Shown: piece after piece, positions 5,132 to 20,318 of the stretch
Position numbering within the stretch: the stretch's first letter is position 1
Layout: each line of letters begins with the position of its first letter
NCBI GenBank assembly: GCA_943704425.1
Contig: CALSCP010001441.1
Span: 60,204 to 98,246 of the forward strand
From: Ministeria vibrans ATCC 50519
Taxonomy: Eukaryota; Protista; Filasterea
Direction: 5' to 3'
DNA: 38,043 bases
Made by a program: the position numbers and the translations under genes
The notes under the pieces: model-generated
What the model was told of the DNA's origin: nothing
The model's database searches: none
Seen by the model: only the letters and a program-made list of their open reading frames with translations

Positions 5132-6626
5132 TCAGTGCAGCATTGTCATTGACGCGGCTGGGTCGTCATGCGCAGCAGTGGCTTCCACAGCAAAGCGTTT
5201 CCCGCCGCCGCCCCAGGCGTACGCCTCCTGTTCTACCCCTATTGATGCGTCCCCACCTCCCCCTCCTCCCCCTTCGTTGCCATGGCCGTTGCTGTCCTCG
5301 TTATTGTCGTTATCGTCGTTATCTTGGTCCATGTCGTCGCTACGTCGTTTGGGCCGTGTCGCACCATGACCACGGTCGATGTTACTGCTGAGCAGCCGTG
5401 CTGCGTAAATGCTCTCAAACTCGCGCAGCTGCGACAGGAACCCTTCGTTGGGGCTGATACAGAATCTCGCGCGAGTCGCCATATACATTGCCTCCTTGAA
5501 CGGAATGCTGCACAAGGTATGCGTCGGTTGAGCACGCAGAGACAAAGAAGGGACAAAAAAGGGAGAAAGAAAACAACAACAGAGAGGACAGGAGAAAGAA
5601 CCAAAGTGAACTCGAGGAAAAGAAAACAAAATAGAATCAAAGTGAAATAGAGAAAAAGAAAACAAAATAGAATCAAAGTGATACAGAGAACGAACAAATA
5701 AAATCAAAATTAATAATAATAATTATTATATTATTTTATAATAATCAAAAATATGAGAAAGAAACAAAACATGAAGCAAAATAGAAGCAATAATTAATAG
5801 AAGAAGAGAAAACAAGTGATAGACTGATAGTGAGAGTGTGTGAACCTTAAGAGGGCCATGGTGCAGGCAATCGCCACTGTGGGTCCGCGAGAAATGCCCG
5901 TTAGGTCATGTACATAGCACACTCCATTGCACTGCAAATTTGGGGGGAGGAAGGTTTAACAAGGTCCTCGGTGTGCCGTTGTAGCGCTGCGTTGTGGTAG
6001 CGTACCTGCTCGACGGCGTGGCGTGCAAAGTCGGCTGCTTGGATGAGTAGCTGGATGATGTTTTCGGTTGTGCGGTCCTCCATGGTCAGCACCAGATACT
6101 CAAAGACGCCTTCGTGGTTCACGCGCACCCACGGGGATTCGTCGTGCGACCGAACGCAGATCACGTGCGTGACTCCGCGCTGTTGCATTGCCTGGCGTTC
6201 AGGAGAGAGAGAGGCGAAAGCGGTTCAAAGGTGAGTCGCAATACGTCAAAAGCCGAATGAGACGGCTGTACACCGCGAAAATGGGGCAGGGCGCTGTATC
6301 AGTTTGCGGAAGGGGTACTCACAATGGGTGTGGGTATGAGGGTGGGAGGGGAGGAGCAAGCAAGTCGTGCAGAGTGCGCTTTGGTGTGATTTTGTCAACA
6401 CAACTTATCTCACCTCAAGATTTTTTTTTCGAGCAAACTCATAAGGTCCCACTATTAACCCAGGTGTGATGGTCTGGCAGTTGCGTCTACAGAGAGAGAG
6501 AGGACGACAAGAAGCGTAAACAAACAAAGTTTGTCGCAAGTAATTATTTTACTTTTGTTCGTAAAGCCAGTCGCCGATGGAGACTGTACTCAACGTGTGC
6601 ATGATACTCTCCGAGTATGCATCCAT
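5132..6626 (-). CDS. STYX: STYX-like dual-specificity pseudophosphatase
   Basis: Exons 6626-6553, 6486-~6414, 6191-6006, 5931-5846, 5507-5132. DWLYEQKRNCQTITPGLIVGPY, GVTHVICVR, YLVLTMED..ENII, P-loop VHDLTGISRG and RFCISPNEGFLSQLREFESIY are collinear with STYX. Confidence 0.85.
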
Positions 6627-6712
6627 CCCAGTAGCAACGTGTTCAGAAAATATTTGTAAATTCTTTTGGGTTTTAGTTTTTTTTTTTTCCACCATTTTTC
6701 ATACTTCCTGGA

Positions 6713-7649
6713 ATGGAGTGGCTCACGTTGAATGTGGGCGGCCGTGTGTTCTCGACGACACGATCGACGTTGATTGCGTAGGCGCTTGCCTGTCTATTTG
6801 TTTATTTGTTTTTGACCTCTCTCTTGTGTATAATTAGACGTGAGCCAGAAGGGTTTTTAGCAAAACTGTGTCTTAACGACGAGTCATGTGACATGCCATC
6901 TACAAAGGCATGCCAGATCCGCAAGATGAGACGTAGACATAACGCGCATTCTTTGTTTAGGATGCGAATGGAGCGATTCTCATTGATCGCGACGGTGACT
7001 ACTTTGCCGCCGTACTCAACTACTTGAGGTAGGTCTGGCGAGGCGAGAGAGATAGAGAGGGAGTCGTTGTTGCTGATAACGCGGGTGGAGCAGACACGGG
7101 AAGGTGATAGTCGACCGGGGGCTGAGTGCAGCGGGACTGCTCGAAGAGGCCGAGTTTTACAACTTGCCCGAGATGATTGCAGTGTTACAGGTGAGCGCAA
7201 TTCAAACAGTAAACCTGTGCGTAGTATGCGTTTGTGTTGGCTAATGTGGGGGGGGGGGGGGGGTTCTTGTGCCCTAGGGAATGGTCAAGGCGGAGGCACA
7301 GGCGGCGGAGACGGCCAATGCGACGAGAGGCAAAGTACGAAAGCAAGTTCATCAGCGCACACTCACTCCCATCATCAAAATCAATACTAATTTGTGTCGT
7401 AGTTTAAGGAAATCTATCGACTGTTTGAGTCGGACGAAGAAGAGCTGGCACAAATGCTGAGTAATCTGAGCGACGGATGGCGGTTTGAAACACTCACTTA
7501 CATCAGCTCGCCATACGACTACGGACAGAGTAAGAAGCACAAACACATCACTATCACCAACTCACACTGGATGTTGTTGGTGCGCAGAGGATGGTGATAA
7601 GAACGAATTCGTGGTGGTTTTGTCTAAGAGAGTGCCTGACACGGAGTGA
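6713..7649 (+). CDS. KCTD5/KCTD2/KCTD17-like BTB (T1) protein
   Basis: Spliced [20 protein letters not shown]...[21 protein letters not shown]...[11 protein letters not shown], then KCTD5-type C-terminus [26 protein letters not shown]...NEFVVVLSK. Stop TGA at 7647-7649. Not in the ORF track as a unit. Confidence 0.88.
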
Positions 7650-7797
7650 ACCAACAAGGAAAAAAATATAAATGAATACTCCTCATAATGTAAAACACCA
7701 ATAATAAACACCCTTGGCGAGTCAAACGATGTAGGTACAAAGAAAGCAGACTTTTCAATTTGTGTGAGTGGTGTAGAGGAAGAGAGAAGTGGACGGT

Positions 7798-8240
7798 TTA
7801 GAAGATGCCAAGCTTGCTGGCGGTGTCGAGGGCGTCCTCGTTGTGGGCCAGGCGCACGAAAGCCTTCTTGGAGCCATCGGGGCGGATGAGCGTGTTGACG
7901 TTGTCAACCTTGACATCGTACAGCTGCTCGACTGCAAGCTTGATCTGGCGCTTGTTGGCGCGCACGTCAGCCGCGAACACAATGGTGTTGTGGTGCTCAA
8001 TCTTCTTCATGGCCGAGTCGGTCGAGAGGGGGAAGCGGATGACGGCGTACTTGTCAAGACGGGGCTGCAGACGCTCCTTGGTTGCCAGACGGCGGGCCTT
8101 GGGGTTTCGCGCCTTGGTCTGCGTCTTGGGCAGGTGGAAGTGCACGCTGTGGCGCACCTTCATCGACTTGCTGGCCTTGCTGCCCTTCACGAGCGCCTTC
8201 TTGGCTCCCTTGGCCTTTGCAATTGCTTTCGTCTCGGCAG
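7798..8240 (-). CDS. RPL23A: 60S ribosomal protein L23a (uL23), main exon; start exon unresolved (N-gap at 8337-8346)
   Basis: RLDKYAVIRFPLSTDSAMKKIEHHNTIVF...VNTLIRPDGSKKAFVRLA...ASKLGIF; AG acceptor immediately before 8240. Confidence 0.95.
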
Positions 8241-8830
8241 CTACGCAGACATCACACACAAACACACAGCATGGTCAGGACAAGTGGCCACAGCACACGC
8301 AGTGTGTGCAGGTACAGAGGAACGAAGTAAAAAAAANNNNNNNNNNCAAAAAAAAAAAAAAAACGAGCCAGTAAGGATACAGACAATGAGGGTGGATGAG
8401 TGAGGGTGGAGCAAGCAAGGTCCATCGTGTGTGAGAGGCAGAAAGGCGCAGGTTGGTTGAGAAGAAAGCAATCGTAAAAAAAAAAAAAAAAAAAAAAAAA
8501 TGCACGCCACGAGAACAAGCAGGAAGGAGAGGACAGACGGGGCCGAGGTGGGCACAGGGCCGAGGACACCGGGTACAGGAAGGGGTGCGCCTGACAGTAC
8601 GCCTTCGACAGTCTTACCGTAAGTTGGGAGAAAAAAAAAGGTCAGAAATCAAAAGTCAAAAGTCAAAATGATTATTTTTTTTGGCTTTTGGTTTTGAGCA
8701 AAGAATGACCTTGGGTCGGTACAGCATGGGTATGGTACGTTGCGTTTTGGCAAAATGGGTGGGATGGGTCTTTATTTTTCTTCTTTTTTTTCCTTTTTTT
8801 TGTGAAACAAAACGAAAAACACACACAAAA

Positions 8831-10229
8831 TCAAGCAAATCTGTCGAGACGGACCTCAATGACACGACCATCAAAGTCAGTGCCATTGAACTCGCTGATG
8901 GCATTGGCAGCACCCTCGGGGGAGTCAAAGAGGATGGTTGCGGCGCCACGGGGACGGCCGCCCGCCGTCTGGAGCACATCGGCACGCACAATGTTGCCGG
9001 CGCTGCGGAACGTGTCCTTGAGCGCCTGCCATGTCACGGAGAACGGCAACTGCATTGTAAGGTGAAGAAAGAAGAGTTGGGGAGTTAGTATAATCCTATT
9101 TTGTGGCCAATTGCGGCGTATACGTTTCCAATGTAGACTTGACGTCCGCTCGACTGGGAGGCGGCGGCGGGTGCAGCAGCCGCAAACGACTGTTGCTGGC
9201 TGCCGCCACCCGACTGCTTCATGCGGTCCAGGTGCACGTCCATGTCGCGACCCTTGAGGTTCACGTTGTGGAACATAGCAATGGCGGTCTGCGCCTCCTG
9301 CGCCGTCTCAAACTGGATGGTGCCCTGGCCGCGCGGCTGTCCGTCACGCCCCATGATGATGTCCGCACGCACCACGTTGCCCGCCTCGCGGAACTTGTCC
9401 TTGAGCTCCTGCCACGTCACAGAGTACTCCAGGTTGCCCACAAACACTTGCGTGCCGTCCTGGCTGGCCTCTCCACCGCGGAAATCGTCTCTTCGCGCAC
9501 TATACGCACATGAAAATAGTAATGGTAAACACACACACACACACACACACACACAAAGACTTTCTGTACTACTTACCGAGGTGCGGGACGACTGTAGCTG
9601 GCGGACGCGCCACCAGCAGCAGCACCACCCGAGGTGCCCTTGAAGGACTCCGTCTCGCGATCCTCACGCAGGAAAATGGCGCGGTTGTGCAGCTCTGTGT
9701 CCTGCAGCGTCTGAACCGCATGCTGTGCCTGCTCGTACGTGGCAAACTCGGCAATGCCGCAGCCCTTGGAGCGACCGTTGCCCGACTCAAACACATCCAC
9801 AAACACCACCTCGCCGGCTGTCTTGAGATGGTCCTACAACAAGACAAAAAAGAAGAAGAATCTCAGGAATTATCAATTCGTTTTTTTTTTCTCTGTTGGC
9901 TCTTGTTGACGGGAAAGGACACAAAAAGACACGATAGAGCACCCTCGTTGAGCATTTGACCAACACCCACGAGGGGCGCAGTCGGCCCAACGAGCGTGTG
10001 CGTCGAAATACGCAATAAAATGACAAAAGAGAAATAAAAAAAACGTGCAACGACAAGGAAGTCGAGGAGGAGAGCCTCTTGCACGGGGAGGGGGTACCTT
10101 GAGGTCCTGCCAGCGAACACTGTACGCGAGGTTGCCAATGAAGACGCGGTTCTCCTTCACGGACGACGCAGGCGGTCGGGCCCCTCCAGCCCGCGCAGCG
10201 CCGCCTCCGTACTGTCGTCCAGCGTCCAT
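8831..10229 (-). CDS. Three-RRM RNA-binding protein, Gbp2/Hrb1/hnRNP-M-like
   Basis: Three RRMs, each with V(F/Y)(I/V)GNL..SV.WQ.LKD and RSKGCG/QPRGQG/RPRGAA motifs; ends EVRLDRFA. Multi-exon. Confidence 0.88.
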
Positions 10230-13629: not shown

Positions 13630-14178
13630 GACACGAACAAAAACTGTGTGAAACTGTGTGTTTAGGAAACTCTGAAGAGAGTGAATGAATAATCTTCAAA
13701 ATCCCCCTTTCTTTCACTTTTTGTACCTCGCCGCTGTTCTCACTCCTCACGTCCTCACCTTAAAAAAAAGTCGTATTGGCGATTGTTGCTCCGTACTCAC
13801 TTGTCCATCGACCCATTCGTCTGTCGGTGTGCGGAGTTGTAAAACCAAGAGCAGTTTCACAGTTTAGCCCCACGGCCGGGAAACCACTCGAGCTCCTGAA
13901 TTACACCCGTAGTTACTCGTCCAATCTGTCCCCGTTGGCGAGAGAGACAGTGCCACCGCCAAACCAGTACGAATTTGGGGAAAATCGGCTGATAAGAATG
14001 CGTTGTCCCGTCCGCCGCTCCACACCCCTCTCTCACTCATTGTCGGCCGCGTATCCCGTTGGCACGTCCTTTTTTGTGCTTGTGGCAGCCTCGCGGGCGC
14101 CTTTCCGTCACTTTGAGCGCATTTGCAAATGATTTCATTCTTTCTCTTGTAGGAAAAAAAAAAAAAAAACAACAGAAA

Positions 14179-17100
14179 ATGACTTCTGTGCGAATTTCAG
14201 AGTCATGCATCGCATACAGCAACCGAGAAACGCATAGTATAGAGGTGTTTGAGGAGTGCAGGGATGGCGCAGAGCAGATTGACTGCGCCGTTGCGTCGTG
14301 GAGCGGACAACTGTTTGGCGTCCAATGCATTGCGCTGAGTCCCACTGCGCAGTATCTTGTCAGCTGCGGGTTGAGCGACATCATTACCGTATGGAATGCC
14401 CGTGATGACACTGTTGCTCTCGAGCTTGTTGGACACGACAGGTGAGAATTGCAGCTCAGTTTATTATGTTATTGTGTGTTACACTGTTGTAAGTATATTA
14501 TAATAATAATAATTATAATATTATTTGAAGTATTGCGCTGCTCTTTGTTTTGCATATTGTCTTGTTTTGACATTGAGTACAGCTCTTGATTCTCTATTTA
14601 TTTTACTATTATTTTTGTCTTCTTCTTCTTCGTTTTATTTTTATGTCTTTGCGTGGTGACTATACCATTAATAAATGGGTTGTATTCTTCTTCTTCTTCT
14701 TATTGTTATTAATTTTTTGTGTTGATTTATCTCATTTTTAGCTCTGTTCAAACCATCCACGTCTCTGCGGACGAAAAGCTTCTTCTGAGTGCTTCCACTG
14801 ACATGACACTCAAATTATGGAGCTTGCCCAGCGGAGTGTGCCAAAAGACGCTCAAACATTCAGAGTAACGTCACTTGAGAAGGGAATCTGAATTAATCAT
14901 TATTGCTATCACTGCATTGTTGTGTTGTACAGTCTTCTTTTCTGCGGTATCCTCTCTCGTGACTGCAAAAAGGTCCTATGTGGCTCTCGTGACTGCTTGA
15001 TGATCCTTTGGGATGTTGAGAGCGAAGAATCGGTGGTCTTTCAGGGTCATTCGAGGTAAAATGGACACAACACACACTCACCCGTGTATCTTCATCCGCT
15101 CGTTTATATTAACATTTCATTGTTTTGTCATTAATATTGTGACTCTTTTTTTTTCTTTTTGTTCAGTTGGGTGTGGGATGTACAATTCTCACACAATGAA
15201 AAGCGAGCGCTGAGTGGCTCGTTTGACAACACAGTGAAGATGTGGGATATTCAGAAGAAAGAGTGTCTAATGACTTTTGTGGGACACGAAGGGTACACGT
15301 AATTTCGTGAGAGCCTCGACTCAATTAACGTCACTTGCTCTTTAGTCCCGTCAAGTCAGTGCGGTTCTCTCTCGATGGAAAGACCATTCTCAGTGCTTCT
15401 CACGACCATACCATCAAAATATGGTCAACTGTGAGCAGTGACTGCACAAAAACACTCAAGGGCCATGCACAGTACGAGCGAAGCAAATCAAACGCAATCT
15501 TCATTTGCCCAAAATCACTCGTTTATTTTTCGTTAATTTTTCGTTTATTTTTCCTTTGACTTCTTAGCCACGTTCACTCGGCAATTTTCTCGTGCGATGA
15601 GACGCACGTGATTAGTGGATCGGCAGACAAGACAGTGAAAGTGTGGGATATGCAGACAGAGGAGTGTGTGCGCACTCTCACGGCACACACAGAGTATATC
15701 AGAAATCAATTTGTCTGAAAGATTTAATAATTTTTGTTCTCTTTTGTTTTCGTTTTTGGTTTTATGCAGAGTTGTTCGTCAAGTGCGCATTGCGCTCGAC
15801 AACAAGACCATTTTCAGTTGTTCTGACGATGGCACGACGAAAAAGTGGACCATTGCCAAAGGAACTCGTGTGAAGACACTCAACGTTTCACAAAGGTCCG
15901 AATACTATTCTCTTGTTATTGTGTTATGTGCCCGTCTTCTTATCAATATAAATACTGAATTGTTCATGACGTGTAGTTTTCTCACGAAGATTGCACTCTC
16001 ATCCGACAACAAGTTTCTGATTGCTCAATTCGACAATGGTTCACAACAGCAGTGGCCTCTTTCCGATCTGTTGCCGTAAGGAAGATATATATAAAAAATA
16101 GTATGACTCTGTCTTATCATGAAATTTAATCAGGTCGCTCGCGTATGACGTTGCATTCTCCGCTGCAATGGCACGCGGATCCGTGGTCAGTCGGTCGATC
16201 AAAGTGCTCGTTTTAGGTGCGACTGAGGCGGGCAAGACCTCGCTGCTGGCTGCTCTGAAGGGCGACGAATTGCCGGGCGAAGAGGATCGCTCAGTGGCGA
16301 CTCGCATGCACAAAATGCGAATGGTGCTGAATAAGGGAACGGGGGTGTTTGAAGCAGTGCCACTTGATGAGTTGCGTCTGGCGAGTCTCCTTGCGAGCAA
16401 TGACGAAGAGATGGAGATGGAAGACGCTGCGACGACGTTGGAGGATCGAGAGGGGGAGGAGAAGACACCAGATGAGGAGGAAGAGGAGGACGAAGAAGAA
16501 GATGAAGAGGAGGGGGAAGAGAAGGACGAATCATCACCTGATCATGTCCACGAGGAAGAGGAGGAAGAGAAGGACGAATCATCACCTGATCATGTCCACG
16601 AGGAAGAGGAGGAAGAGAAGGACGAATCATCACCTGATCATGTCCACGAGGAAGAGGAGGAAGAGAAGGACGAATTATCACCTGATCATGTCCACGAGGA
16701 AGAGGAGGAAGAGAAGGACGAATCATCACCTGATCATGTCCACGAGGAAGAGGAGGAAGAGAAGGACGAATCATCACCTGATCATGTCCACGAGGAAGAG
16801 GAGGAAGAGGAAGAGGAATCACCTGACGTTCTTGAGGAACAAGAGGGGACGAAGGAAGCAAACGAGGAGAAAGAGGAGGACCAGGTGAAGACGATGCCCA
16901 CAGAGGCCGACAAGAGCGAGAAGAAGGAACCAGACAGCTGCATGCATAGCACTGGGGCTCACACTCAGCTCAAGGTGCACCACCCCATCCTCGCGACGCT
17001 CCCTCCTCGTCCCCCTATGCCAAATAACCCATCCTTCTCGCTTCCTCGCACACCCCCTACCCCAATGTCCCCTTCCATGGCGCTCGTCCGAGGACTACTT

Positions 17101-19024
17101 GGAAATGCGATGCACAAGGAACATGTCGACTTGGAGATGTTTGACTTTGCCGGTAAGAATTCTTTAGATTCGTCACTCTTCTTACTCGTTTGCTCTCTCC
17201 ATCCTTTTTTTCCCCGCTTCTTAGGCGAGTCGATGTACGACTCTCTTCCTGCTCTCTTCATGGGAGCCGAGTCTGTCTACGTCCTCGTCTTCGACTTGTC
17301 CGTCATGAACAACAGAATTTGCGCTAATCGACAGTATGACCATCTGATCAAGTGGGCCAACATCATTGCCCATCAAGTGCCTCTCACAGACGAGTCTTAC
17401 TTCCGTGTGATCGTTGTGGGCACTCATCTCGACACGTTTCCCAACAACACTATGGGAACGGACCTCCTTGAGATTGTCTCTCACGACATTCTTCAAAAGG
17501 TCGGTTCTGTGCTCGGCAGTCACCTCACAATGCCACGCGACACTCCCGGCGTGCCCTTCTTCCAGGTGGGCAGCAAGAAGCACATTGGACTAGAGGGTGT
17601 GAGCGCCGCTCTTCACCAGGCGGTGCGCAATCGCACTCTCCCCCTGGAATGGGTCGCTGCTCAAGATCTGATGGGGCGATGGGCGCGTCTGGGTCACGTG
17701 ATGCTCATGTCCAGTGTCGGCGATTTGGGCGCCCTTGAGCTCAACGATAAGCCTCTGGTGACGTTGGGAGATATGATGTCGGATATGAACGACATCCGAA
17801 AGGGATTGGTGCCCTATCTGGAGAGCGCCGCGGACATTCTGGTGTGTCGTGCGGATGCCGCGAGTCAATGCGTGAGCGAGTCGGACACGATTGTGTTTGA
17901 TGTGCCGCGGCTGATTGGAGCACTAGAGCTGCTGTGCTCGGTGGTGATGGCGCAGTGGGGACGCGCGAAGAGCAAACGGGCCGTGGCTATGCTGCGAGAG
18001 GTTGTGAAAGCGGGTCAGATGCACCCGGACGACGGAGCGAGGCGCACAGCGCGTCTTCTTGGCGAACTGGACAAGTTCAAAGACGCGTCTGAGTGTGGGT
18101 TCCCCGCCGAGGCCGCCGAATGGCTTGTGTGGACTGCGGCGGCTCCACATGCCACTAATCTGCTGACCGTTCCGAGTGAGCCCGCTCAGAAGCCAGCGAC
18201 TTGGGGCCAGTATTTCTCCGGCTTCCTTCCAGGCGCCTCCAAGTCAAGTCCTCGTCAACCTCATCTTATTCCCCTTCTTGCTGGCGCCGATGTGTCCGAC
18301 GTCGACGTTTTTATGGTCTGCCTTGAACGGCTTTGCCTCATCTTTCGCCGTGACGCACAACTCTTTGTTCCGATGCTCCTGCCCGAACGTGCCGCCTTCC
18401 TTGACGCACCCATCCACTTCCCCGCCCAGCTTTTCCTCTACCAGTTTGCCTGCAATGCAGAGACTCTTCCGGTCTCTCTGGCGACCTTCCAAATGCTCAT
18501 GGTGGCCCTGTGGCGCGAATCGTTACCGGATAGTCCTATCCGTGCAACGCAGTGGTGCACCAATGTCATGATGATAGACGCGTGCGTCCCGGTGCGTCTG
18601 CGACTCGAACCAACTGAGCCGTTTGTGCGCGTTGAGCTGACGGATGACAGTGACCCTGTGCGAGTACAGCGCACTATGGATCGCATCTGTGGAGCGGTGT
18701 GCGACGGGACCCGTTCGCTGCGGTGGGGCTGGCGCGGCGCACCCGTCCTTGTGCCCGCCCACCCCTTCAAGAGCAACGCACCCCTGTTCGCAGCAGAAAA
18801 AGTGGCCAAAGCAAGCGCATTTTACCGTCGAGCAGACACTGTGTGGGGTGAAGTGGCGGCACACGGGGGCTTTGAACGGACGTGCAACGTGACTCTGGAG
18901 AAGTGGTGGGTGGCCACGCAGCGGAATGGTAAGAAACTCAATAAAATTCAGAAAAATAAATAATAATTGAACATTAGAGAGCTGTACTCATAATAATAAT
19001 AATATTAATAATAATAATAATAAA

Positions 19025-19059
<35 letters not shown>

Positions 19060-20102
19060 GTTATTATTGTTATTATTATTATTATTATTGTCGCTTTTCC
19101 TTTCGTGTGATGGATAATTATTATGTTATTATTGGAAGTGTCTACCTAGTTAATATTATTATTATTATAGAATAATTGTTATTGTTAACTGAAACGTTCG
19201 ACTCTTTAATAGACATGTCCGTTGCTCCTCGATACACATACGCGGGTGCGCTAGTGGTGGGTGTGAGCAAGTACAAAAGCATAAACCCGGCTCTGCAACA
19301 GTATCCGGATCTCACTGGCGTGACACACAGTGTCAAGCTCATGGCTGACATGTGGAGCAAGCGCTACTTTGATGTGTGCGCCGTGTCGGATGTGGACCCA
19401 ACGACTGGCCAGTGGGTGGCAGCAGTGACCGAGAAGCGAATTAAGGAAGCGGCACTGTATCTTGCTTGCAAGGCAAGCTTGCCGGCAGGCAGAGCGTCTC
19501 TGCTGGTTGTGCATCTGATTGGACACGGAGTGAGCGACGCCCGAGGTGGACTGGTTCTCAGCGACGCCATTACGACACCCAACGATAAGGAGTCGTGCTT
19601 TAATTTGGATGCGCTGCGTGGGATTCTGAGTGCACATGTAGCATGGACTGGGTGCAATATCCTGGTTATCTGCGACTTTTGCAATTCGGGTGCTCTTGTC
19701 AAGGACGACATTGGGCCTTTGGTTGGTCCACCTCTTTCAGGCTATGCGCGTCAGGTCCTCACGAGTTCACTTCCCTATGCTAATGGTTACATGACTATCG
19801 ACGAAACTCAGTCACAACTCACGGCTCTCCTGATGTGCGCACTGGGTCCGAATTCAGAAGCGTTTGAGCCTGGCGAGACGGGCATCTCAGTGCGTGACCT
19901 ACGTGGTCGCCTGCAGGCACTGGGCTCCACCTCTATGTTTCAGGCGTTGCTACTCGGTCGCATTTGGTCCGACTGGCACAGCACGCCCAACGATGGCGAC
20001 ATTATACTGTACCGCCATGGCAATGGAATGATCTCTGCTCCCACTCCTGCCCCCGCTCGCACTTCTGCTCCCGCTCCCATTCCTGCCCCCGTGTGGTTAT
20101 AA
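14179..20102 (+). CDS. WD40-repeat / Roc GTPase / COR-like / caspase-like (peptidase C14) multidomain protein
   Basis: Exons 14179-14441, 14742-14864, 14933-15055, 15167-15292, 15346-15471, 15568-15693, 15770-15895, 15977-16075, 16134-17152, 17225-18928, 19213-20102, all GT-AG and phase-compatible. WD40 motifs (SGSFDNTVKMWD, GH); Roc G1 VLVLGATEAGKTSL, G3 DFAG|E..Y, VYVLVFDLS, G4 VIVVGTHLD; C14 motifs ALVVGVSKY, HLIGHG, ICDFCNSG. Confidence 0.75.
16516..16825 (+). repeat. Coding tandem repeat, 48-bp unit x ~6 (EEEEEEKDESSPDHVH)
   Basis: Near-identical copies of gaggaagaggaggaagagaaggacgaatcatcacctgatcatgtccac; one copy has tca>tta (S>L). Confidence 0.95.
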
Positions 20103-20318
20103 TTATGTTTAGTATAATACATATTCCTTAAAATATTTCCTTTAACAGTTTTGTGCCTTTTGATCAGAAACTGACGAGAGACTTTGCGCAAAGCAAAAAA
20201 GAAACAACTCAGTTTCTTCGGTTACAATGCTGTATGATTAAAACTAATTTGTCCTTTAACCTTAAAAGTTAAAATCATTATTCATATTATTTTACCAGAC
20301 ATACGCTAACAATTACCA

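Follow-up and report, generated by a model that had tools for sequence, protein, structure and literature searches.

Structure and expression of the gene

The window analysed here is a stretch of 38,043 nucleotides (nt) from the genome of the filasterean Ministeria vibrans ATCC 50519, corresponding to positions 60204-98246 of contig CALSCP010001441.1 (C1441); the genome assembly comprises 29,722,531 bases in 2860 contigs. The plus strand of this window carries, at 14179-20102, one spliced, expressed nuclear gene of M. vibrans that encodes, in this order, a WD40 region, a Roc GTPase domain, a COR domain and a caspase-fold protease of the Peptidase C14 family. The gene model consists of 11 exons and 10 introns, all of the latter with GT-AG boundaries, and has a coding sequence (CDS) of 4725 nt, specifying 1574 amino acids (aa). 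The features of the gene, in window coordinates, are as follows:

14179-14441, 14742-14864, 14933-15055, 15167-15292, 15346-15471, 15568-15693, 15770-15895 and 15977-16075 (+): exons 1-8, WD40 beta-propeller
14442-14741 (+): intron 1, GT-AG
14865-14932 (+): intron 2, GT-AG
15056-15166 (+): intron 3, GT-AG
15293-15345 (+): intron 4, GT-AG
15472-15567 (+): intron 5, GT-AG
15694-15769 (+): intron 6, GT-AG
15896-15976 (+): intron 7, GT-AG
16076-16133 (+): intron 8, from the WD40 part to the Roc exon, 58 nt, GTAAGG...AATCAG; contigs of runs X1 and X2 (see below) restart precisely at 16134
16134-17152 (+): exon 9, linker, N-terminal half of Roc and acidic insertion
16510-16821 (+): acidic tandem repeat inside Roc, between the P-loop/switch I part and G3, delineated with Tandem Repeats Finder
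17153-17224 (+): intron 9, inside G3, 72 nt, GTAAGA...TCTTAG; in frame, without a stop
17225-17631 (+): exon 10, C-terminal half of Roc with switch II, G4 and a G5-like GSK
17632-18921 (+): exon 10, COR-A and COR-B (residues 136-565 of the structural model)
18929-19212 (+): intron 10, from COR-B to the protease, 284 nt, GTAAGA...TAATAG; AT-rich, 18% GC
19213-20102 (+): exon 11, caspase-fold Peptidase C14 domain and a Pro/Ala-rich tail; stop codon at 20100-20102

The map of open reading frames (ORFs) on the plus strand shows open pieces of ~41 aa, followed by a 931-aa ORF (16168-18963) and a 308-aa ORF (19176-20102). According to an exon-by-exon phase check, every exon of the spliced model is open in the phase inherited from the preceding exon, and the sole stop codon is that at 20100-20102. 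Introns also differ from exons in composition, with GC contents of 18-43% versus 45-59%. A previous, sequence-only reading of the locus had linked the WD40, Roc-COR and protease parts into one gene through introns at 16076-16133, 17153-17224 and 18929-19212, and all the coordinates that it gave, including these joints, proved correct when checked against the sequence.

Splicing was assessed by comparing four sequencing runs over the interval 14140-20139. One of the runs, X8, is DNA, and its contigs are continuous through the introns, whereas X1 and X2 (from one study) and X5 (from another) were identified as transcript assemblies by the absence of introns. The joint corresponding to intron 10 (18927/18928 to 19212/19213, with 284 nt skipped between GT and AG) is present in X1, X2 and X5 and absent from X8; the shorter-side anchor measures 115-255 nt in the three runs, and one 1894-nt contig spans from 17963 across this junction to past 20139. 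At the other end of the gene, positions 1-1519 of X1 record 1, a contig of 1549 nt in total, align with 14183-16544, and the modelled exon pieces of this interval (259+123+123+126+126+126+126+99+411) add up to exactly 1519 nt. The eight introns of the WD40 part, the 58-nt intron at 16076-16133 among them, have therefore been removed just as modelled. Finally, transcript pieces end at 17153 and resume at 17224 where the DNA contig is continuous, which fits the removal of the 72-nt intron and the restoration of the G3 motif. Thus, the three splicing events proposed from the sequence alone are borne out by the transcript contigs, which, in the case of the 72-nt intron, suggest the spliced form only. 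Retention of this intron would add 24 residues to the GTPase switch without truncating the protein, and may represent a possible on/off isoform.

The transcript contigs are broken at two places, 16544/16824, at the acidic repeat, and 17962/17963. Nevertheless, we consider the locus to be a single gene because of the combined evidence from the transcript contigs, from the profile and fold searches, and from paralogues in which Roc-COR and C14 are encoded in one ORF (see below).

At the 5' end of the gene, in the region 14120-14183, a pyrimidine tract is followed by TAG|G at 14151-14152, resembling a 3' splice site that just precedes the ATG. Among the transcript contigs, one has its end 30 nt before 14183 and another continues 228 nt beyond. 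An upstream exon, either untranslated or coding, may belong to the gene.

Domain composition of the predicted protein

The profile and fold searches were performed exon by exon, or with paralogue ORFs that are uninterrupted in the DNA. Exon 11 matches the Pfam Peptidase_C14 profile (PF00656) with 26.2 bits, above the cut-off of 21.4. The catalytic dyad already recognized in the sequence-only reading is formed by His104 (HLIGHG, codon 19524-19526) and Cys156 (DFCNSG, codon 19680-19682), both of which are invariant in 15 aligned copies and are aligned by the C14 profile with the dyad of Arabidopsis metacaspase 4 (AtMC4; E 0.012). The structural model of the protease (predicted local distance difference test score, pLDDT, 81.7) matches MALT1 (Z 19.1), AtMC4 (Z 18.2, 20% identity) and caspases-4, -9 and -11 (Z ~17.5-18), although the scores to MALT1, metacaspases and caspases (Z 17-19) are effectively tied. 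As modelled, the protease domain is complete, with a caspase fold and an intact dyad. Asp154, located two residues ahead of the catalytic Cys (DFC), reproduces the DxC arrangement of meta- and paracaspases and weakly hints at a preference for basic residues at P1.

The GTPase motifs of the Roc domain are distributed over two exons. The G1 P-loop, GATEAGKT, is intact at 16216-16239, and the P-loop signature GxxxxGK[ST] is preserved in all 33 loci examined. The DFA codons of G3 occupy 17143-17151 and are followed at 17152 by the first base of the Gly codon; removal of the intron at 17153-17224 completes the DFAG-E motif. The G4 motif, THLD (17422-17433), is likewise intact and is the same as in LRRK2. 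The Pfam Roc profile (PF08477) nonetheless reaches only 26.4 bits, below its cut-off of 27, and covers residues 12-52, corresponding to the N-terminal 41 positions of the profile, because the domain is split by an insertion. No Pfam family was found on exon 10: the COR-A and COR-B profiles are silent, and the C-terminal half of Roc is unmatched (16-19 bits for the C-terminal halves of paralogues). Similarly, a phmmer search with exon 10 produced no match among PDB sequences. In a search of the same sequences with a profile of the paralogues, seven of the eight matches are LRRK2 Roc chains, which are not significant (E 0.13-0.9); the alignment places VGTHLD of the family on VGTHLD of LRRK2, and the DFAG.E switch II also resembles that of LRRK2.

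By structure, in contrast, the module is clear. Exon 10 was modelled with AlphaFold (AF2), using an alignment that includes 20 paralogue copies (mean pLDDT 83, predicted template modelling score 0.80). The best 34 Foldseek matches of the model in the PDB are all Roco proteins, with the C. tepidum Roco ranking first (E 1.5e-7), followed by LRRK1 and LRRK2. Model residues 136-565 superimpose on the COR of C. tepidum Roco (residues 626-940; 3dpu_B) with a Z-score of 14.5 over 280 residues, residues 1-567 on LRRK2 residues 1398-1868 with a Z-score of 12.0, and residues 16-135 on the isolated LRRK2 Roc (2zej) with a Z-score of 9.8 and a root-mean-square deviation of 2.7 Å. Judging from the model, this is a genuine Roc-COR module, albeit a highly divergent one, in which COR is recognized by structure alone, and the description of this region in the sequence-only reading as 'COR-like' was correct. 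Of the four domains named there, WD40 and C14 are confirmed by profiles above the cut-off, whereas Roc remains below it (26.4 versus 27) and COR has no Pfam match.

The insertion within Roc lies between secondary-structure elements. Part of it, at 16510-16821, consists of 6.5 copies of a 48-nt unit with 97% matches, each encoding an acidic 16-aa unit; this repeat broke all transcript assemblies. The distance from the P-loop piece to G3 amounts to 823 nt here versus ~350-420 nt in the paralogues, every one of which has a shorter insertion at the same site. A homodimer prediction for COR-B (two copies of exon 10 residues 345-567) scored 0.00, with the fold of the segment itself uncertain and the alignment unused, and thus speaks neither for nor against dimerization.

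Exons 1-8 all match WD40 or beta-propeller profiles in Pfam, two of them above the cut-off (best 36.6 bits, cut-off 27), and together encode an eight-repeat WD40 propeller. From exon 2 on, each WD40 exon holds one repeat and begins in phase 2, and its length, between 99 and 126 nt, is always divisible by three. All these cassettes are phase-symmetric and, therefore, skipping or duplication of any of them would preserve the reading frame; no exon-skipped contig is present among the splice joints listed in the transcript contigs. WD40 exons, likewise with one repeat per exon, are located upstream of at least 16 paralogue loci, in a survey that covered a subset of the loci.

A family of collinear paralogues in Ministeria

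In the M. vibrans genome, the protease exon has 64 matches, whereas exon 10 has 78 and the P-loop piece has 48. In 32 of the 39 near-full protease loci, Roc-COR is found directly upstream on the same strand, and in 27 of these 32, the P-loop exon is present as well. Thus, the genome contains a family of at least 32 collinear paralogues. In two of these, Roc-COR and C14 form an uninterrupted ORF (L031:6542-9673, 1044 aa, and L032:565-3252, 896 aa) and, therefore, the fusion is independent of splicing. The pairwise identity of Roc-COR in the family ranges from 53% to 95%, with a mixture of recent (87-95%) and old (53-60%) duplicates; the window copy is distinct, its closest paralogue being 72% identical.

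Outside the genome, a profile run against 1.84 billion protein representatives retrieved only the family itself and, as weak hits, three Pfam Roc proteins of unknown taxon. Word-indexed searches of 5.8 billion clusters returned 7 metagenome ORFs for Roc-COR and 13 for C14, one of the latter being 99% identical to the window copy. Neither protein-library search (1.84 billion representatives and 5.8 billion clusters) matched a bacterial protein to the family's Roc-COR or C14; long proteins with this type of C14 were not found in the protein-library search, and a DNA search of a phage collection gave no match. A metagenome contig, L065 (ENA ERZ23497376, scaffold_1299), carries WD40 exons, Roc-COR and C14, and its DNA is 98.2% identical to the paralogue on contig C1344 and 97.0% identical to that on C916, themselves very similar copies. 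Given this near-identity, established by comparison of one contig, we take the metagenome matches to come from the same species or strain rather than to be independent occurrences.

Among 185,579 bacterial and archaeal genomes, a tblastn search with the C14 profile detected one weak match of 71 residues, in Streptomyces. The corresponding protein of Streptomyces cellostaticus (L066; NZ_JALLIN010000006.1, 5746-10206; 1486 aa), the sole match to the protease motifs in prokaryotic genomes, combines a caspase-like segment at its N terminus with AAA_16 and WD40 repeats, which is the classic layout of bacterial caspase-STAND-WD40 proteins. As far as these searches see, the family is confined to Ministeria.

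Relationship to known systems

The closest described architectures are bacterial. Proteins that consist of leucine-rich repeats (LRR), an AP-GTPase (Roc), COR and a C-terminal caspase, TIR, trypsin or other effector domain have been reported, with up to 11 paralogues in one bacterium (Kaur, Iyer, Burroughs and Aravind, 2021, PMC8195603). A gasdermin-activating protease of Runella zeae, labelled Roc-COR-CHAT, cleaves and thereby activates a bacterial gasdermin in a manner that depends on H796 and C804 (Johnson et al., bioRxiv 10.1101/2021.06.07.447441), and its gene adjoins that of its gasdermin substrate. Like the Ministeria protein, these proteins combine, in a single chain, an N-terminal repeat domain with Roc and COR placed directly before a C-terminal caspase-fold protease; multiple paralogues exist in some of the genomes, and the Runella protease requires its His/Cys dyad. 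By contrast, the bacterial proteins have LRR and often CHAT, whereas the Ministeria gene is eukaryotic, is interrupted by ten spliceosomal introns, and encodes WD40 repeats and a protease of the Pfam C14 family. In the ESM Atlas, the named cluster nearest to the L031 ORF is a cyanobacterial COR-A/COR-B/CHAT protein (score 0.84), a lead only.

With LRRK2, LRRK1 and C. tepidum Roco, the protein shares the Roc-COR-A-COR-B fold (Z 12-14.5) and, with LRRK2 in particular, the THLD G4 motif, the DFAG.E switch II and the presence of a WD40 domain in the same polypeptide. The output domain, however, is a kinase in LRRK2 and LRRK1 but a protease here, and their WD40 domain is C-terminal rather than N-terminal. 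Furthermore, the long acidic insertion in Roc sets the Ministeria protein apart from all three Roco proteins, and the similarity is too low for Pfam COR.

Expanded Roco families tied to cell-death or immune modules occur in other eukaryotes. In Trichoplax adhaerens, CARD, death or TIR domains accompany a ROCO repertoire of no fewer than 17 genes (Civiero et al., 2014, PMC4104024), and the LRR-ROCO genes of brown algae, proposed to encode immune receptors, have one repeat per exon (PMC11378527), each repeat being a phase-symmetric exon, like the WD40 repeats here. However, those proteins possess putatively caspase-recruiting adaptor domains or no effector, whereas in Ministeria the protease itself is fused.

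Apaf-1 and the NLR proteins of apoptosomes and inflammasomes, as well as bacterial caspase-STAND-WD40 proteins, display a comparable logic, with a repeat sensor, a nucleoside triphosphate-dependent switch and an effector of the caspase family; by analogy with Apaf-1, the sensor could be WD40 repeats. The switch differs, being a Ras-like Roc GTPase with COR instead of the STAND AAA+ ATPase, with no evident ring-forming module, and the protease is C-terminal and in cis. None of the exons of the gene contains a STAND NTPase domain (NB-ARC or NACHT) detectable with Pfam, so the gene would work like the STAND/NLR-apoptosome receptors without being a member of them. The protease shares its fold (Z 17-19) and the HxxGHG and DxCxSG types of motif with metacaspases and the paracaspase (AtMC4, Yca1, MALT1); it differs from them in lacking a prodomain, a type II linker, Ig and death domains, and its identity to them is at most 20%.

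In the literature searched, there is no report of a Roc-COR-caspase architecture from a eukaryote, all reports being bacterial; the terms 'Filasterea' and 'metacaspase' do not occur together in any paper found, and neither do 'Roco' and 'Peptidase_C14'. The Ministeria genome paper (PMC9492541) mentions neither caspases nor GTPases, nor the Roc-COR-C14 family. The impression gained from the sequence alone that this architecture had never been described therefore holds for eukaryotes within this literature but not for bacteria (PMC8195603; 10.1101/2021.06.07.447441). The architecture itself is known from bacteria; the apparent novelties are its presence in a eukaryote, its WD40 head and the large size of the family.

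Possible mechanism and function

We propose, with a probability of roughly 0.5, that the gene encodes a self-contained sensor-switch-effector protein, which most likely serves defence, cell death or the recognition of self versus non-self. The WD40 propeller would bind a ligand or keep the protein autoinhibited, and Roc-COR, like its counterparts in C. tepidum Roco and LRRK2, would respond to its nucleotide state by changing its conformation or the way it oligomerizes. The C-terminal proteases would then be brought together or released, and would cut themselves or a substrate. In C. tepidum Roco, it is COR-B that provides the dimer interface; since the protease of the Ministeria protein begins only a few residues after COR-B, it would be activated by induced proximity or release. 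The choice of biological role reflects how large and divergent the family is (53-95% identity), as well as the bacterial Roc-COR-caspase/CHAT conflict systems; by this analogy, function as an immune or cell-death receptor is plausible.

Several observations weigh against this interpretation. With respect to the gene model, no one transcript record covers the whole CDS, contigs cannot show transcript ends, and the supporting runs are labelled merely 'RNA?'. With respect to the sensor, the WD40 repeats are not visibly more divergent among paralogues than Roc-COR or C14 (identity to the copy on contig C1443 is 56-75% for the WD40 exons, 69% for Roc-COR and 63% for C14) and, accordingly, nothing points to a fast-evolving sensor. 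Nor is it obvious in which direction the switch would operate, since C. tepidum Roco is reported to be dimeric with GDP and monomeric with GTP. In the protease, an invariant Ser aligns with the second acidic S1 residue of metacaspases, which makes substrate specificity uncertain, and no substrate gene was identified: gasdermin (PF04598) has no match in the genome, although control genomes are silent too, rendering this result uninformative. Among defence systems, the sole PADLOC match is to mad8, weak (E 0.0036) and confined to the N-terminal half of Roc, with nothing else of relevance.

The most serious alternative is that the protein is a housekeeping signalling Roco, acting in the cytoskeleton, trafficking or development in the manner of the Dictyostelium Roco kinases or LRRK2, with limited proteolysis in place of phosphorylation as its output and no role in defence or death. 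Eukaryotic Roco proteins of known function are mostly involved in precisely these processes (PMC6337361, PMC4104024), the WD40 repeats show no excess divergence, and transcripts of the gene come from ordinary cultures, in both of two studies. However, at least 32 paralogues in a 29.7-Mb genome, including both recent and old duplicates, are unusual for housekeeping regulators and typical of receptor repertoires, and those Roc-COR-caspase-like proteins that have been described so far are conflict systems (PMC8195603; 10.1101/2021.06.07.447441). We therefore regard a housekeeping function as rather unlikely.

Less probable still is that the gene is expressed but enzymatically decayed, encoding a pseudo-GTPase and/or pseudo-protease scaffold, or belonging to a family on its way to pseudogenization. 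Roc is indeed interrupted by ~260 residues that include a young 48-nt tandem repeat, Roc falls below the Pfam cut-off and COR goes undetected, and several protease matches among the paralogues contain one stop. Yet every exon of the window copy is open, G1, G3, G4 and the His/Cys dyad are intact and invariant or nearly so among the aligned paralogues, and the insertion separates secondary-structure elements at a site where all paralogues carry a shorter one. Finally, the notion that two or three separate genes (WD40, Roc-COR and a stand-alone metacaspase-like protease) only appear fused owing to read-through or an artefact of contig assembly, for which one could invoke the fragmented ORF map, the protease exon's own ATG two bases past the acceptor, and the inability of contigs, none of which holds the whole CDS, to prove a single molecule, is largely refuted by two canonical GT-AG junctions that keep the frame and remove all stops, by a 284-nt joint seen in three runs of two studies and absent from DNA, by the uninterrupted ORFs of L031 and L032, and by collinearity across 32 loci.

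Caspase-family proteases are usually linked to sensors via STAND ATPases and death-fold adaptors, and Roco GTPases have been studied chiefly because of LRRK2, with the control that Roc-COR exerts on the output domain being debated. In a eukaryotic Roc-COR protein with a protease output, peptide cleavage would offer an easily read reporter of the Roc-COR switch. Moreover, Ministeria is a free-living filasterean and, as such, a close unicellular relative of animals, so the family would add a data point on the assembly of cell-death and immune machinery near the animal root. The bacterial architecture, in which repeats are combined with an AP-GTPase, COR and a caspase and for which predictions and tests have been confined to prokaryotes, gains an intron-bearing eukaryotic counterpart with a different sensor.

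Variant loci and genomic clustering

One of the loci with an uninterrupted Roc-COR-C14 ORF, L031 (C2822:43000-52999), has additional features upstream. The segment 3582-9676 (+) of this locus includes an ORF that matches NB-ARC (34.5 bits) and DUF7779 and, weakly, Roc, and which ends just ahead of a candidate 62-nt GT..AG intron at 6407-6468. Phase arithmetic indicates that this candidate intron would join the NB-ARC ORF in frame to the P-loop/Roc-COR/C14 frame. If it is spliced, a STAND ATPase, a Roc GTPase and the caspase-fold protease may all be present in a single chain. An ORF with LRR is located farther upstream, and WD40 exons were not found at this locus.

Tentatively, the family as a whole could provide Ministeria with 32 or more cytosolic receptors for cell death or immunity, in which Roc-COR replaces the STAND ATPase and a caspase-fold executioner is present in cis, perhaps serving defence or self/non-self recognition during aggregation. 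Such a repertoire would constitute an undescribed eukaryotic answer to the problem that apoptosomes and inflammasomes solve. In this broader proposal, which we hold with less confidence than the one made for the window gene, at least one member, that on C2822, may unite NB-ARC and Roc-COR with the protease in one chain.

At L033 (C2643:46000-54000; 6133-8001, +), an open frame of at least 623 codons encodes a protease domain that has diverged to 30% identity. This frame has no Pfam match and no Roc-COR upstream, and its fusion partner may be different. On C1441 itself, two more Roc-COR-C14 paralogues are located ~19 kb to either side of the window gene, at contig positions 52409-55606 (-) and 99673-102920 (+), a pattern of loose clustering.

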